NCBI RefSeq assembly: GCF_001194135.2
Contig: NC_068998.1
Span: 685,004-749,003, forward strand
DNA from: Octopus bimaculoides
Lineage: Eukaryota
Length of the DNA stretch: 64,000 bases
Direction: 5' to 3'
Below the pieces are notes generated by a model. It was not told where the DNA came from, searched no databases, and was given only the letters and a program-made list of their open reading frames with translations. Within the stretch, counting starts at the first letter, position 1. Each line of letters opens with the position of its first letter. A program made the translations under genes and the position numbers. Below, piece by piece: positions 3,872-27,462 of this stretch.

Positions 3872-4019
3872 GTAATCAACAAAGATGATCCTCATTGGTG
3901 GCAGGCCCGAAAGTGGAATTCGCCCTCCACTGAGCCAGCCGGTCTTATACCGTCTCCAGAGTTGCAAGAATGTCGTGTGGCATCGGCAGCTTCTGAGAGA
4001 GCCAAACAGGAGAGTGCAG
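3872..4019 (+). CDS. CASK: CASK exon, SH3 C-half and start of HOOK ([15 protein letters not shown]...[28 protein letters not shown])
   Basis: TTTCAG acceptor. WWQ and [10 protein letters not shown] motifs. Ends in phase 1 at CAG|GCAAGT (GC donor), which joins the phase-1 exon at 15399 in frame. Confidence 0.92.
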
Positions 4020-7000
4020 GCAAGTATTCGAAGAAAGAAAATATAGACAAGTATTCCAGACGAGAAAATGGAGGCAAGTATATCCGTACAAAGCTACCAA
4101 AGCGATTAGATAGAAAATATATTTAACTCTCGGCTTAATTTTATTCTTTTCTCTGCCAAGCTCCACTAACTTTGCATGTCATGACATTTAGATTATTGAC
4201 AGAAGATTTCTTAACACAAAAACAAACAAATATTACCGCTTGCAATTTTATGACTGATTTTCCATTTCTTTCTTCAAAGCAGGTTTCCTGTCTTAACCTG
4301 AAGCTAGTTTGCTATCAGAAATTTAACAGCAAATATAAACACACACAACCTTTAGTTGTTTATTCAAAATTCACAACTTGCACATCCAACACTTATAGTC
4401 TTTCTTTATTTCCGTTATGTTCTTAGAATGATGCCATATGTTTCTTATTCTTCACACACACACACACACTCTCTCTCTCTCTCCCCACCACCTCTCTTTT
4501 TGGCTAGAGTTTTTTGTGTTTTTATTTCAAAAATTCAACAGTAGTGCCCCAGCATGACCGCAACTTTAAAGCTGACACAATTTAAAGGAAAAATAGAGAG
4601 ATAAATTAATAAAACTAGTGAATCCACTTTTGAATATTTGTTTGCAACATCAACTTTTTGGGGATTTATAGATTGGTTGGTTGTCAATTTTAACAAATAG
4701 CTTTCAAACTGAATGGAATATTACACAAAGTTCAACTAATGCTAGAACTTTAAAATATGAGATTCATTTTATTATTGGTAGCTTCTTTTTTTTTATTGAA
4801 ACTTTAAAAAAATTGAAATGATCCTTTTAACTCTTACAATATAAAAATAGAAGAATTTATAATCCAGCTGTATTTGCTATTTTCCTAAATCCTTTTTTTC
4901 TTCTTTAATCTTCCGATTTACGTTTTTAATTGTTCTCAGTTTCTGCCAGAATTTATGGTTAATATCTTTCCCTGCTTCAAGAGATTTTAATCCTTCATCC
5001 AGAAATATTCTATTTACTTTCGGTTCTGAGAAAACATCTTTACTTAATTCTTGTAAACAATTTTTAAAGTAGTTGTTAAAAGTATTCTATAGAAAAGAGG
5101 TGGAGGGAGTTGATGGAACTTTCTGCTCACAGAGTCTCATGAAGAAGCTGTTGTGGAGTTTCTACATGCATTATATTTATGATTAGACACACATGTAACA
5201 AACAAGGTTTCACTTGCTAAATACTAAGACAACTATAACACAAACACTACACAATGACTGCTGTAAGTACAATGTAGAGTGGACTATTTACTAGAAAGTA
5301 ATCCCTTTGTAGTAAATACTATGTCAACTACAAAGGTGAAGTTAACAATGACCATTGTTTACTATGTTAGTTACTTCACAGCTACAAGGTCTGGGGTTCA
5401 ATCTCAAGGCGTTTTCTACTCAAAACATTGGGTTAACTAATGCTTTATAAGTGAAATTTACTCGATAGATGCTGTGCAGAAGTCCACTGCTTTTCCTGAT
5501 TTATATCAACCAGAAAACTGGAGGTTTTCAAAAGAAGTTCCTTACAACAGTTTTTCTGCACCAAGATACAGACACTCCCTTATGACCCTCACCATCAGAA
5601 ATGCAGTGATTCACTTTTTGATTTGTTGAAATCCTGTAACCTAATGACAATGCTACTGTTCACCAATTCCAGTAGAAAATTATAAGTTAGACGATAAATT
5701 AAGAAGCAAATGAAGAGAAGTTTTTAGTACTTGTTAATCTCAGAAGGATTTAAGGCAAAGTTCACCTTGACAGAATTTGAACTCACAATGTTACAAGCCA
5801 GAACTAGACAAGTCATTTCCTCTTACACTCCAACACTTGTAGGACATTAAATCGTATCCTGGACACACACACACACACACACACATTGAAATGAGTTATG
5901 TAAACATTAGAGTGAAATGATTAATGAGTGAGTAGAGTAACAGGATTTCCTGAATGTTTTCCTTTGTTCGTACATTCATTAAGTGGCAATATTATCTTAT
6001 TATCATTACTAATTAGATACTTAACTAATGAACCACATCTTTAACAAGGCATAAAGCCAAACACCAATGCAAGAGGTTACTGAGTCAGTTATATTTTAGC
6101 TACCTTTGTGCATCTCTGCTTACAATATACTAGGAGACATGTAAGTAAATGCTGTGAGGCATCCAGTGTGGTGCTCTGCTATTTCACCTCCCCTTCCACC
6201 TCCATTAAAATCAAGTTTAGAAAATATAGAAGCATATTCCTTGACTGTTGTATCAATTTGTAATCTATCAACAACAATAGTCTTCATATTTAATGTTCTG
6301 AATAATCAATAATCGAGAATTTAGTAAAATAATTATGTTTTTATATTATTAATTTAGTGTTTATGTGAAAGTGAAATAAATATTTAATTCTTGGAAACTC
6401 ATTTTGTAATATTTTTGTGGACACTGAAGTATGTTGAAGGCCATCTATTAGCCCACAGTCAGTCATCATCAGTGTTCCAGCACTGACCCCTGGTCAGTCC
6501 ACAGATCCCTGATGTTCTGTCTTTTATTCAGTGTATCTACATTATCCAAATGAGTCCTTCCCTTGTTAGAAGATTTTGCAGCTATTTCTGACAAATCAAT
6601 AACTATGTGGAGACTCTTTGGCCAGTGCAGCTGCATAAAGAACAGATATCTTGAGGTTAAAATGCATTGCAGTACTTGTCCTGATTTCTTGCATTACCAG
6701 TTCAAATCCCAGCAAGATCAACTGTTTCCTCCTGGATTGGAGTTAATAAAGCACCAGTTCAGGGCAGAGGGGGCTTAATGGAATTCTTAGAGCATCAGAT
6801 GGGATAATTAGTGACTTTTGTTCTGATTTTATAACTAGATTAAAGAATAAAGGAATTCAAATGAATTCATTAGTTTGTGCTAAATTAAATAAATAATATG
6901 TAATGGACATCTATTTCGGCATCTTTAGATTCTTGTAGTATTTTTTTTTTTCAGACACATGAAAATAGAAAGATAGAATAGAAATAAAAATCAAATATTT

Positions 7001-15398: not shown

Positions 15399-15539
15399 GT
15401 CACTGTTCGTGGTTTGGACGGAAAAAAAAAGACAAATATTTAGCCAAACTCAATGCCATTTTTGACCAATTGGATTTAGTTACTTATGAAGAAGTCGCAC
15501 GTTTACCTGCATTTCTACGGAAGACACTGGTCCTTTTAG
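15399..15539 (+). CDS. CASK: CASK exon, HOOK to GK start ([47 protein letters not shown])
   Basis: TCTTCCAG acceptor, TAG|GTGAGG donor. 141 nt, phase 1-1. CASK-type [22 protein letters not shown] motif. Confidence 0.96.
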
Positions 15540-18751: not shown

Positions 18752-18832
18752 GCGCACATGGTGTTGGACGAAGGCACATCAAAAACACATTAATTACAAG
18801 TCATCCAAACAAATTTGCTTATCCCATTCCAC
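18752..18832 (+). CDS. CASK: CASK exon, GK P-loop region ([28 protein letters not shown])
   Basis: CACCAG acceptor, CAC|GTAAGT donor. 81 nt, phase 1-1. [12 protein letters not shown] is characteristic of CASK/MPP1. Confidence 0.96.
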
Positions 18833-20665
18833 GTAAGTATGTTCTACTTAGCCATATTGATCAACAGCACACAACTGGTGGATGAACTAAGTATTTTAGA
18901 ACTCTCAACTAATCTTTCTTTCCTTTTTATTATTCCTGACACTGTTTGACATTTATGTTTAGTGTGGAGTTGTACCAAGGTACGATTAGACCCTGCAGTC
19001 TGAATCAACTACAGGGTACACTATAGGAGGACTCTGTCCAGTGAGTAATTATCTGAGATGTTATTAGCTGGTATACTCTGTATTAATAATAGTACCATAG
19101 TACTACAGTCCATAGTACCAGCCTGTATCAAATATGGTCCTGGAAATTGTTGCAATCTATAGCAAATATCTACTTTATATAATGAAGTGTAACAGATATA
19201 TCTTTAAGGTATAATAAGGTGTTGTATTAGATGTCTAAGGTACTATCTTATACTATGGTGTGTAATAGAGGAATCTATTTAAAACAGTTGATGCTAAAAC
19301 TTGACAAACTATGAGCAAAAACAAATTTATAAACCTAGCAAACAAGATCCAAATATTTTGATGCTAATTTCATTTCTTAAAGCACGATGACTTAGCGTTT
19401 TTGAAAAGGACATTGAAGTGAATCTTGATTTTCAATATCCTGTGTTGATCATGTTGGAATAAAGCTAGAAATAGAGTGGATAGTACAAAGTGGAAAGCAA
19501 TGAAAATTCTCCATCAACTCCAGAAGAAAATCCATGGAGAGAATGAAGAGAGAAAAGAAAGTTGTATGAGACAAATATCTTGGTAAACAAACAGTGATGT
19601 TTTTAATAATGTTACAGTAAGGATAATGCCTTAGCAAAGGAGTTAGGAGGAGAAGGAGGAGAGTTATCAGAAAATAAAGAGTAGGAAGAGCAAGTGGGGG
19701 TGGGGTGGTTTACAAAGGAGTGTTATTCACTGATGCATAAAACAGGAATGTGAATGAAGCCTCTTATATGAAATGTTTAATTTACTGTAAGAACAGAAAA
19801 GAGGAAGGAGATAAAATGCATAATTAGCTTTCAAAGTTTAATCAATAAGGAAACGGCCTGGTATCAAAGAGATGCAGCTTGGCATTGAAATGATTTCTTT
19901 CCAATGGAAACTAGTCGAGGAATTGTCAGTGGATCTATTGATAAGTAGCGACTATTGGCTGCTCTTTTGATCCCTCGATGCTGGCAACAGAGAGAAGAAC
20001 TAATACGGATCCTTCAATAACATGCAATTATTTGAGATACTAGTCTACATCTCCAACAGACATTTATTTAAAGAATTTTTTGACTTTTTGATACAAGCAT
20101 CTCTATTAAAGCAATTCTTGTACACCTTTTGATCAACGGTTTAGAAAAGAACTCTTCTCACTCTCTCAGTTCAGTTATTCTCAATCTTGCAGATCATTTA
20201 CTTTTTTATAATTTATACAACCATTTAATGTACGACTCTTGTTGAGTATTGGTGCTAGAATTTAATTATTGAATTTTGATATATTGACCTTAATTAAGCA
20301 ATTCATTTAATGATGTGAAATTAACTCTTCATTCACACAAAATCAATCAAGAGGATATGCCACCAGACTACAAATCCAGAGGTAGCAAGCTCACTTCATT
20401 CTTTATTTTGGTAACTCAATTTTATCTATGAAGAAGAGGAAGATTATCTGGAAATGTTTAGAGAATAAAAGTTTATGCAGTGGAGTGCATAATCTTATCT
20501 GGCTAATCCCACCTTTAAAGACAACAAGGCTAAGACCATATCATAGAACTGCTTGATCAAGGTTGAGTTAAGCTAACCAAATGCAATAATTATTTCTCAA
20601 ATTGTAGAATTTGTTAATTAAATCTCTTTTGGTATAGAAATAATTTTCTCTCTCTCTCTCTCCAG

Positions 20666-20868
20666 ACACAACACGACCGCCTCGAAAAGATGAAGAAAAT
20701 GGGAAAAATTACTATTTTGTGACACGAAAGAAAATGATGGCTGATATAGAAGCTAACGAATATTTAGAATATGGAACACATGAAGATGCTATGTACGGAA
20801 CGAAATTAGAAACAATACGACATATACATGCTGAAAGTCTTATGGCAATACTTGATGTAGAACCTCAG
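20666..20868 (+). CDS. CASK: CASK exon, GK GMP-binding subdomain ([19 protein letters not shown]...[21 protein letters not shown]...AILDVEPQ)
   Basis: (CT)n-CCAG acceptor, CAG|GTAACG donor. 203 nt, phase 1-0. Overlaps ORF 20719-20997. Confidence 0.97.
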
Positions 20869-21439
20869 GTAACGACATCTTCATTAACACTGTCATCATC
20901 AACATGTATAACACGATCATCATCATCAGCATCACTAACAATAGTCACCATCATCATCCTCATCATTAACAACATCATCATCATCGTATTCTTGTAACTG
21001 ATTTTATTCTGGGTTTAAAAAGCCATGGCTGTTGAATGCCACATCAAATGCTTAAGGAATTTTTTCTTTTCAGTTCTGGGTTCAAATCTTACTGCAACCA
21101 ATTTATAATTAATGAAAAGTTACCTCCATTAGAGTATATACCCCATGATGGTGGGGTGTTGAGATCATTCTGGGGTCATGTTTGAAATAACATCAAGTCA
21201 CTTAGTCAAATCCCCAGAGGAATTACATAAACTCACTAATTTCCAAAAGACTTTTAGCAAAGCCTTACACAATAAACAGCTTAGTTCAGTCAATGGCACA
21301 ACATAGCAACTTGAGTTCAATTCCCAATGGGAACTCAATTTGTCATTTAAATACTTTCAGAAAGAAATCACATAAAGGACACCATGTCTATTTGATGCTA
21401 ATATTTCAGATGTGGCTTTGTCATAAACACCCACATTTC

Positions 21440-21565: not shown

Positions 21566-22573
21566 AGAAAGACTGTATGGAAATTAACATCTCAAGTAGG
21601 AACCAGCTGTCCCAAGACTTAGAATTGAAACTAAAAATGGTGAATTTGTTGAGAAAGTTAATTCAGTGACCATTTAGAAGCTGTTTCATTGATTCATTTT
21701 CTTAGTCGTAGACTATACACTCACACAAGGGCACACATAAGTCTCCAAACTGCTTAGACTTGTGACATACTTCTATGTTTAATTTCTAGCCCCTGCACCA
21801 TAATTAGAAGTGACCAGAACATTTTAATAGTCACACAAGACTACCAGTATTCCTTACATCATATATATAAATCTTTTCTTGGAGCTGTTATGACTTTTGT
21901 TTATATTTAGTTTTTGACTGAAGAACAGAAAAATGTTTGCAGGCATTTTTAAGTCAATTTCCAATTTTTATTTGTTCTTACAATTTTTCTTTTTCTTGCA
22001 GCCATTTATCAAGGAGTCATTGTTTTGTGCATCGGAATGAGTAACAATTGTTTGATTAAGTGGATTAATTTTGTCTGATTAAGATTGATTTGAAGACCAT
22101 TGAATCAATAATCCAGTGTGTGTGTGTGTGCGTGTGTGCGTGTGATCATGTGTAAGAAACAGCTCACACACACACCTGTCATTTATTCAATCTCCCTCAT
22201 TGGTGAGGGTTGTTCAATTGCCAACAATAAAGAAGATTCATTTGTTAGGCTGTGTGTGTGTGTGTGTGTGTGTGTGTGATTGCACTGGCAAAATTATAGT
22301 AATCTCTAGTTTAACCATATAGATGCTGTACTGACTGAACCAACCCAAATTTCTATGAAGAGTATCCCATCATTGGTTCTTAAATCTGTAGAATTTAGAT
22401 GAGTCTCTGTCAAATAAATGGCTTATCAATGGTCTGTCTTCTTCACTGCCACAGATCCCCCCCCCCCCATAAACTAACATTTATACATATTTTTGTGCTT
22501 GTCATNNNNNNNNNNCCCCCCCCCCCCATAAACTAACATTTATACATATTTTTGTGCTTGTCATTTTTTTCAG

Positions 22574-22654
22574 GCAGTAAAGGTGTTGCGAACAGCAGAA
22601 TTCTCTCCCTTTGTGGTATTCATAGCAGCCCCTACGATACCAGCTGTGACTGAG
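22574..22654 (+). CDS. CASK: CASK GK exon variant A ([27 protein letters not shown])
   Basis: CTAAC branch-like motif, T-tract CAG acceptor, GAG|GTAAAA donor. 81 nt, phase 0-0. Matches CASK [20 protein letters not shown]. Confidence 0.93.
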
Positions 22655-23459
22655 GTAAAATTTGATCCGGTGTCATCGTGTCATGCCTCATATTAACCTT
22701 CTTCAACCCATTGCTTTTTCTGTCTTCAGCTGACCTCAAACCCTTCTGTGTTTACATGTGTGTGTGTGTGCGTGTAAAACCTTAGTTTCTTTTTCTTTTG
22801 TAACCCCTATTGCTCCTTATTTAGTTTTTTGCTGCTTACCGCCAGCTTATTCTTGTGTCTAGAATCTTCTTCATTGGAAATATGCTGTCATTCAATTCTC
22901 TAATGTTTCCGTTTTGTTAAAAAAAAATTTTTTTAATTAATGTTATAATGAAATACATCCAAAATGGGTGTGTGTGTGTGTTATAAATACACACACACAC
23001 ACATGCATCCACCCACACACTTATGTGTGCATACATAAATTACTGAACAGTTTTGGCTTCAAAAAACGAAACCAAACTTTTTCATTCCTTTAAAAAGAAT
23101 TTACGCTATTTTGATGTTAGACAATTTCTTTGAAGTGTTGTTTGAAGATTTGCATGAATATTCTGGTCTGGTATTAGTTTCTTCTGGAGAGAGCGTGACG
23201 GGTGAAGGTAATGGATATGTGTATCATATTCTATCCAGCCTATTTTTCTCAGGTAAGAAAATACAAATATATTTTCTTGTAGGTAAGAAGGCAAACAACA
23301 AAACCAAATACAAAAAAATCACCGAGGAACAAACCATTGCTGACTCTGCATGCACAGCTGTGATTTCTAATTTCTGCTTGATGGCTTCTAGCTAAACCTC
23401 CCCACCTTTTAACTTTAGTATTAAAATGCATGGCATTGTCCTGATTTCATTTTTTCCAG

Positions 23460-23543
23460 GATCTGAAAGCTTTACGTACGGCTGAGTTTGCTCCCTTCAT
23501 TGTCTTTATTGCCCCACCATCTCTCAGTGATGCCCCACTACAT
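23460..23543 (+). CDS. CASK: CASK GK exon variant B ([28 protein letters not shown]), paralogue of variant A
   Basis: TTTTTCCAG acceptor, CAT|GTAAGT donor. 84 nt, phase 0-0, no stops. 14 of the first 20 aa are identical to variant A. Confidence 0.9.
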
Positions 23544-27285: not shown

Positions 27286-27462
27286 GATGGAAGTTTAGAA
27301 CGGCTAGCAAGAGAAAGCGAGCTTCTTGAAAAAGCTTATGGACATTACTTTGACATGAAAATAGTAAATAATGACATTGAAGAAACTATTCAAAGTCTTG
27401 AACTAGCCATTAAGGATATATCTGTAACGGCACAGTGGGTCCCAGTTAGTTGGGTCTACTGA
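27286..27462 (+). CDS. CASK: CASK terminal coding exon ([35 protein letters not shown]...QWVPVSWVY*)
   Basis: TTTTGCAG acceptor, phase 0, stop TGA at 27460-27462. The [10 protein letters not shown]-terminus is typical of CASK/MPP1. Confidence 0.97.

Follow-up and report, generated by a model that had tools for sequence, protein, structure and literature searches.

A probable mutually exclusive exon pair in the GK domain of octopus CASK, with a conserved UGCAUG upstream of the second exon

Does a single octopus locus supply CASK with two interchangeable versions of one part of its guanylate-kinase-like (GK) domain, and if so, how old is the arrangement and what might govern the choice between them? 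CASK, a scaffold protein central to synapses and cell polarity, has a catalytically dead GK domain whose role is only partly understood. The question is raised by a 64,000-nucleotide stretch of the Octopus bimaculoides genome (contig NC_068998.1, positions 685,004 to 749,003 of the forward strand; hereafter the window), in which two homologous exons, termed A and B, lie between the CASK exon that ends in ILDVEPQ, termed e4, and the terminal coding exon. The reading that we favor, with a probability of about 0.8, is that A and B are an old, tandem-duplicated pair of mutually exclusive exons in the GK domain of CASK, of which each mRNA takes one. Positions are given in window numbering throughout, and every CASK exon lies on the plus strand. 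The elements on which the argument turns are the following.

20666..20868, + strand: CASK exon e4, GMP-binding subdomain, ending ...ILDVEPQ; donor shared by A and B
22574..22654, + strand: exon A, 81 nucleotides, 27 residues, short-tail (S) type
22655..23459, + strand: A-B intron, 805 nucleotides, with the sole UGCAUG cluster near the pair
23460..23543, + strand: exon B, 84 nucleotides, 28 residues, probable cephalopod form of the long-tail (L) type and alternative to A
27286..27462, + strand: terminal coding exon, DGSLERL...WVPVSWVY plus stop; acceptor shared by A and B

The first-pass annotation, made from the letters of the window, had described two homologous phase 0-0 exons of 81 and 84 nucleotides with intact splice sites and open frames, and every detail of that description is borne out. 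The two exons are adjacent; A is bounded by the acceptor ...tttttttcag/G and the donor GAG/gtaaaa, and B by the acceptor ...ttttttccag/G and the donor CAT/gtaagt. The shared e4 donor is gtaacg after 20868, and the terminal exon is entered through the acceptor ttttgcag and closes with a stop codon at 27460-27462. Over their first 20 residues A and B are identical at 14, and the third base has changed in 13 of the 14 matching codons, only the proline codon CCC being the same; these counts agree exactly with those first reported, and nucleotide identity over the first 60 nucleotides is 36/60. The differences comprise three exposed helix residues (AVKV in A, DLKA in B), one residue at the end of a strand (AAP in A, APP in B) and the whole of the following loop (TIPAVTE in A, SLSDAPLH in B). 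In tblastn searches of the window, A and B match each other at about 3e-7, and A, B and CASK homologues match one another at E values of about 1e-6 to 1e-9, which rule out chance similarity of the two exons; the same approach found no third copy of the exon in the 64-kb window. In-silico transcripts that run from e2 through e3 and e4 into one of the two exons and end with the terminal exon have an open frame of 226 residues with A and of 227 with B, and the frame is also open with A and B together or with neither.

Comparison with the cuttlefish Sepia, whose genome holds both exons, supports the proposal made at first sight that the duplication is old and that both copies have been under purifying selection. 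Exon A is identical between octopus and Sepia in 27/27 residues, with seven synonymous and no replacement changes, and exon B in 19/24 residues, with six synonymous and five replacement changes over its first 24 codons; A has thus been kept more tightly than B since the octopod-decapod split. In a blastn comparison that took in everything from e4 through the terminal exon (6.4 kb in octopus, 11.8 kb in Sepia), the only conserved non-repeat islands were 22545-22658 (88.6%), which is A with 29 nucleotides upstream, and 23415-23530 (79%), which covers B together with 45 nucleotides upstream of it. Because both exons stand as conserved islands in an otherwise unalignable intron, both have been kept since the two cephalopod lineages parted, and the pattern of substitution supports the maintenance of both by purifying selection. 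The neighboring exon e4 is 97% identical in Sepia.

How the two exons are used is seen most directly in relatives of O. bimaculoides. The RefSeq isoforms X5, X7, X8 and X10 of the congener O. sinensis carry a B-type exon exactly where X9 and X12 have A. In the 90% cluster of Octopus CASK proteins, four of the 15 members listed (of 38) carry B and the rest A, with none holding both and none holding neither. Transcript-derived material points the same way: in a Logan protein cluster from a decapod cephalopod, A is present in four members and a B-type exon in one (P0518), and the 3278-nucleotide Logan contig that encodes P0518 (L011, from SRR30931883) joins e4 to a B-type exon, and that exon to the terminal one, with no A. 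Since this contig holds one unbroken open reading frame of 903 residues, it was derived from mRNA. In the Sepia pharaonis genome (L012) the exons e4, A, B and terminal follow one another as they do in octopus, and the B of that genome is identical to the B exon of the contig at 99/99 nucleotides. Across 29 cephalopod proteins, none contained both exons and none lacked both. The O. sinensis isoforms with A or B and the cuttlefish mRNA with B in place of A uphold the mutually exclusive splicing that had been thought probable, and B is probably used in O. bimaculoides as well. These full-length proteins were reached with a 277-residue two-form alignment and then with an 841-residue chimeric query, which joined foreign N-terminal parts to the octopus C-terminus in its B form and whose E values have no meaning beyond that of reaching full-length proteins. 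A 153-residue B-form query had matched only proteins shorter than 265 residues (targets apparently being limited to about 1.75 times the query length), all of them with the usual ALKVLR...FIAAP exon and none B-like, and the protein representatives matched by exon e4 alone included no B type.

The pair extends well beyond cephalopods, and the same two length classes recur: S tails have seven residues and end in E or Q, and L tails have about 12 and end in N, D or H. RefSeq isoforms of three Haliotis species, Patella vulgata and Littorina saxatilis contain either S or L, none having both or neither; the gastropod S form has 27 residues (AIKVLR...FIAAPTLPAIHQ) and the L form 32 (ALKVLR...FIAAPRAIDLKEMKNVN). 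In the chiton Liolophura, isoforms X5 and X7 have S only and X6 has L only, and in the nemertean Lineus most isoforms have L and X10 has S. The Littorina genome places S (20650-20730) before L (21242-21337), and the brachiopod Lingula has a first copy of 27 residues followed 1.15 kb downstream by a second copy with a good acceptor. Octopus A, with its tail TIPAVTE beside TLPAIHQ, TIAAIHE and TLTPTTE in S-type exons elsewhere, is by its sequence clearly of S type, and the likeness of this tail to that of vertebrate CASK, noted in the first-pass annotation, holds (FIAAPTITPGLNE). The companion claim, that the tail of B resembles Drosophila, was rejected, the likeness being slight; B makes better sense as the cephalopod counterpart of the mollusc long-tail exon. 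We assign octopus B to the L type because it stands in second position, because the tail of Sepia B is intermediate, retaining the charged motif (SEIREKK) of chiton RPSDLREMRNVPVD (SDLREMR) and Haliotis RAIDLKEMKNVN (IDLKEMK), and because a UGCAUG motif lies upstream of it. In a neighbor-joining tree of the exon peptides, each of about 30 residues, the mollusc exons cluster by type, S with S and L with L, and not by species; the tree is otherwise weak and leaves cephalopod B, the nemertean exons and the insect exon unplaced.

From these sequences the S/L pair predates the mollusc classes and probably predates the split of molluscs, brachiopods and nemerteans. An alternative is that the pairs of cephalopods, gastropods, chitons, nemerteans and brachiopods arose by independent duplications, and the brevity of the shared core (20 residues), the weakness of the exon tree, the long branch on which cephalopod B sits by itself and the failure of the nemertean and Lingula exons to sort cleanly by type would all be consistent with such a history. 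We nevertheless consider it improbable: octopus, Sepia, Littorina, chiton and the nemertean Tubulanus all have S first and L second, the two classes of tail length are conserved, the long-tail motif persists in Sepia B, and four genomes that represent three lineages carry a UGCAUG about 30 nucleotides 5' of the second exon. A single ancient origin is therefore the history that we prefer. The suggestion that the pair was ancestral and differentially lost elsewhere finds support in lophotrochozoans only; no second copy of the exon was found in the loci of the sea cucumber Apostichopus or the crab Portunus, and in the crab the single copy is fused to e4. Nor was a second copy found, so far as searched, in the locus of the sea slug Elysia. 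A still older origin, in which an S/L pair with its UGCAUG formed an Rbfox-controlled GK switch in the last common ancestor of bilaterians, with deuterostomes keeping S only, ecdysozoans one fused exon and spiralians both, is in our estimate unlikely; if it is true, few regulated switches of exons in synaptic scaffold proteins would be older. Two further lineages show exons of another shape: in Branchiostoma (P0405, P0433, P0435; APSIASMNE+VQKKAMNAN) and Owenia (P0268; SLSSLTE+VKGIN) the exon has short-tail length and an extension that starts with V (GTN), and some long tails may accordingly be produced by an alternative donor further downstream and not by a second exon.

What might select one exon over the other is suggested by the intron between them. 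UGCAUG is the binding site of the Rbfox (Fox-1 family) splicing regulators. The octopus A-B intron contains three copies, against about 0.16 expected, and (U)GCAUG is absent from the intron that precedes the first exon in octopus (1705 nucleotides), Sepia, Littorina or Lingula (658-2191 nucleotides). The octopus sites are the following.

23151..23156, + strand: UGCAUG 309 nucleotides upstream of B (B-309); Sepia counterpart B-313
23347..23352, + strand: UGCAUG at B-113; Sepia counterpart B-99
23415..23459, + strand: conserved 5' flank of B (blastn island against Sepia) with UGCAUG at 23427-23432 (B-33), the likely branch site cctgat and a polypyrimidine tract

In Sepia the motifs lie at -35, -99 and -313 of the second exon, all within the 1280-nucleotide A-B intron, and the likely branch site of B reads tgtgat. 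Littorina has a UGCAUG at -32, the sole one in a 6.7-kb interval, together with three more GCAUG in the same 511-nucleotide intron, and Lingula has one at -29, the sole one in a 2.9-kb interval. The proximal motif thus falls 29-35 nucleotides upstream of the second exon in octopus, Sepia, Littorina and Lingula, a coincidence whose joint chance we calculate at about 1e-6, using the motif density of each species and a 26-nucleotide window and counting the two cephalopods as one lineage. In the sea cucumber Apostichopus the only UGCAUG of the interval (L004, 15596) lies 30 nucleotides downstream of the single exon, a position associated with exon enhancement.

With the cluster downstream of A and upstream of B, and with one motif beside the likely branch site of B, the arrangement has the configuration expected for a factor that favors A and represses B. 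Known Fox-regulated exons offer a model: at calcitonin exon 4 a UGCAUG at -34 allows Fox-1/2 to keep SF1 off the branch point, and in the mutually exclusive egl-15 pair exon 5B is repressed by ASD-1/FOX-1 acting on a UGCAUG upstream of it, downstream motifs being enhancers of exons (PMC2777236). By analogy, an Rbfox-family protein bound about 30 nucleotides 5' of B, next to the branch site, would block recognition of B, and Rbfox at the same cluster, lying downstream of A, may also favor A, so that Rbfox-rich cells would produce the A form, and cells poor in Rbfox the B form. The analogy suggests an Rbfox-type switch, including this direction. Exclusivity could instead be imposed by competing RNA base-pairing of the docking and selector kind seen in insect Dscam. 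The start of the octopus A-B intron can pair with sequence 5' of B (-20 kcal/mol; z = -3.4 when set against shuffled sequences), and in Sepia a perfect eight-nucleotide complement (GCCAUGCA/UGCAUGGC) joins the same two regions. Between octopus and Sepia, however, conservation is confined to the acceptor flanks and does not extend to the pairing partner downstream of A, and the conserved element itself is the UGCAUG; we consider control by pairing very unlikely.

Several observations weigh against mutually exclusive use of A and B, and they must be set beside two competing explanations. The first concerns O. bimaculoides itself, in which all eight RefSeq isoforms examined (X4 and X7 lie outside that set) use A, as do the UniRef model and a GenBank entry, and in which versions of those eight isoforms with A exchanged for B are absent, on exact look-up, from the protein collection. 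The tail of B also evolves fast, the exon encoding 28 residues in O. bimaculoides, 29 in O. sinensis and 33 in Sepia. Taken at face value the uniform use of A would make B a relic in this species, silent or very rarely spliced, and CASK in effect a single-form gene there. Such a relic is hard to reconcile with an uninterrupted frame flanked by a strong acceptor and a gtaagt donor, with a conserved upstream flank and a ratio of six synonymous to five replacement changes over 24 codons against Sepia, and with four B isoforms in the congener O. sinensis; moreover, the absence of B is judged from the 15 listed of 38 cluster members. We regard a relic B as quite unlikely, and a pseudo-exon reading of B was rejected.

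The second explanation arises from the mechanics of the locus, because exclusivity is enforced neither by frame nor by intron length. Both exons are multiples of three and in phase 0-0, every combination is in frame, and an intron of 805 nucleotides rules out steric exclusion, so that A and B could be ordinary cassette exons, sometimes both in and sometimes both out, with a quantitative choice in place of a strict switch. The chiton Liolophura models X1-X4 and the single Tubulanus model (S then L) do include both exons, the only departures from either/or use among the orthologues; these represent either real co-inclusion or gene predictors that chained two in-frame exons, and ab initio predictors do produce both-exon models from in-frame tandem exons. 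Against cassette behavior, both exons or neither occur in 0/29 cephalopod proteins and in no Haliotis, Patella or Littorina isoform, and by the structural model a protein with both exons would contain one helix and one buried core strand of the GK fold twice over, and a protein with neither would lack them. Independent cassette use is thus, in our view, very unlikely. Three further points count against the proposed pair: the RefSeq XP isoforms are predicted models, the second Lingula copy can be read for 15 codons only before it enters an N/poly-T stretch, and UGCAUG is a short motif. On balance we retain the reading of A and B as mutually exclusive exons.

The consequence of exchanging A for B can be placed on the GK fold. 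The exon region aligns to residues 107-134 of the human CASK GK structure 1KGD, and in an AlphaFold model of the O. bimaculoides protein P0265 (73 sequences; pLDDT, the predicted local distance difference test, above 90 in the GK domain) exon A spans residues 390-416, taking in the end of helix 388-394, then a loop, the buried strand at 401-407 and most of the loop 408-417, which is of lower confidence and leads into the LID helix 418-437. This agrees with the earlier description of the exon as a GK core strand and the loop into the LID region. A full-length AlphaFold model of an O. sinensis B isoform, with a mean pLDDT of 50 and used for the order of elements only, shows the same succession of helix, strand, loop and helix, with the B tail disordered. 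The differences between A and B map to the exposed start of the exon's helix, the end of the strand and the whole loop. MAGUK GK domains hold phosphopeptide ligands with the GMP-binding subdomain, and this subdomain is encoded in e4, which is common to the A and B forms. The notion that the exons provide two alternative target-binding surfaces is accordingly unsupported as it was put, and a change in the core and the LID hinge would be the better description of the swap on the basis of the models.

The remainder of the locus fits the same gene. The window is animal DNA, AT-rich with many repeats and assembly gaps, and the last seven coding exons at the 3' end of CASK were mapped on its plus strand by tblastn with CASK fragments and inspection of splice sites, which also placed the three exons upstream of e4.

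3872..4019 or 3872..4073, + strand: CASK exon e1, end of the SH3 domain and HOOK region
15399..15539, + strand: CASK exon e2, start of the GK domain, ending ...TLVLLG
18752..18832, + strand: CASK exon e3, P-loop remnant

Exact matches of the window exons to the UniRef protein A0A0L8GWP2 of O. bimaculoides (P0265), which carries A, and to the CASK isoforms that RefSeq gives for this species identify the gene as O. bimaculoides CASK. The GK region matches human CASK GK (PDB 1KGD) at E = 1.8e-87, and the top matches are named CASK and carry PF00625. Both alternative donors of e1 are of the GC kind, CAG/gcaagt at 4019/4020 and GAG/gcaagt at 4073/4074; the long form occurs in P0265, RefSeq X1-X3 and Sepia, and the short form in RefSeq X5 and X8. 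The insert of the long form is an internal repeat (KYSKKEN/KYSRREN). A 10-N assembly gap at 22507-22516 is flanked on both sides by the same stretch of about 49 nucleotides (ccccc...ataaactaacatttatacatatttttgtgcttgtcat; window 22458-22565), which sits 8-67 nucleotides upstream of the exon A acceptor and is probably a gap-closing artefact; owing to this gap and its duplicated flank, the branch-point region of A is unreliable in this assembly.

A number of side observations concern the exon that ends in DVEPQ. In octopus the intron that follows it begins with an (ATC)n repeat that continues the reading frame of the exon (20869-20990) and is probably an ordinary microsatellite. In Elysia chlorotica the real exon is followed by a tandem array of about ten partial copies of its 3' end (L001, 11370-12429), each consisting of the exon end, a donor and a microsatellite coding for THTH; they are either a minisatellite with a captured exon end or an assembly artefact. 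Apostichopus japonicus, a second species and unrelated to Elysia, likewise has duplicated ends of the exon, two partial copies lying downstream of the real one (L004, 14624-14674 and 14781-14825). Alternative downstream donors of the same exon add 21 residues (VCDQLKLQWYLFFKTSKNLEK) in Littorina X1 and X2 (L010, 18459-18521) and 11 residues (VKFHHGHPILQ) in chiton Liolophura X1-X5, and a JGI metatranscriptome protein (P0003) has a seven-residue insert (LLGTEMD) at the junction.

Set against known systems, the octopus pair resembles the tandem-duplicated mutually exclusive exons catalogued in human, Drosophila and C. elegans (PMC9741552, PMC5740500, PMC4165533) in adjacency, homology, near-equal length and phase. 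Like those pairs it has intact splice sites, is old, shows selection on both copies and replaces a piece of a folded domain; unlike them, its exclusivity is not enforced by frame and its transcript evidence comes from relatives. Neither CASK nor any MAGUK GK domain was among the catalogued pairs in the literature searched. The Fox-regulated systems egl-15 5A/5B, FGFR2 IIIb/IIIc, alpha-actinin NM/SM and calcitonin exon 4 (PMC2777236) share with octopus a UGCAUG upstream of one exon, about 30 nucleotides from the 3' splice site by the likely branch site and conserved in position across distant species. The octopus case differs in that the direction of regulation and the tissues are drawn from analogy. 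Human CASK varies by splicing at exons 11, 19 and 20 and in a long form of exon 23, all in inter-domain linkers (PMC8208546). The alternative-donor insert of octopus e1 (3872-4019/4073), which lies before the GK domain, resembles the alternative 5' splice site of human exon 23L (PMC8208546), whereas A/B exchange replaces part of the folded GK core, for which no vertebrate CASK counterpart has been reported.

The first-pass annotation was aware of no earlier description of the pair, which agrees with the literature searched and not with the databases. Our searches of the paper library found no description of a mutually exclusive exon pair in a CASK or MAGUK GK domain, and a paper on synaptic scaffolds of Aplysia and Octopus analyzed alternative transcripts for unc13 only. 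RefSeq CASK models of O. sinensis, Haliotis, Patella, Littorina, Liolophura and Lineus already contain the same two exons at the same position, as automated predictions without comment, and the O. bimaculoides models examined hold only A. What is new here is the conserved UGCAUG upstream of the second exon; the pair itself is already in automated annotation.

In summary, an animal superphylum appears to have kept two interchangeable pieces of the GK core, comprising a strand and the LID hinge, for several hundred million years, and the O. bimaculoides gene models probably miss one CASK protein form. The two forms are a natural variant pair for asking what the GK domain contributes, whether to partner choice, to SH3-GK closure or to stability. 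A UGCAUG kept from octopus to brachiopod would, in turn, be a very old instance of Rbfox-type exon control outside vertebrates, flies and worms.

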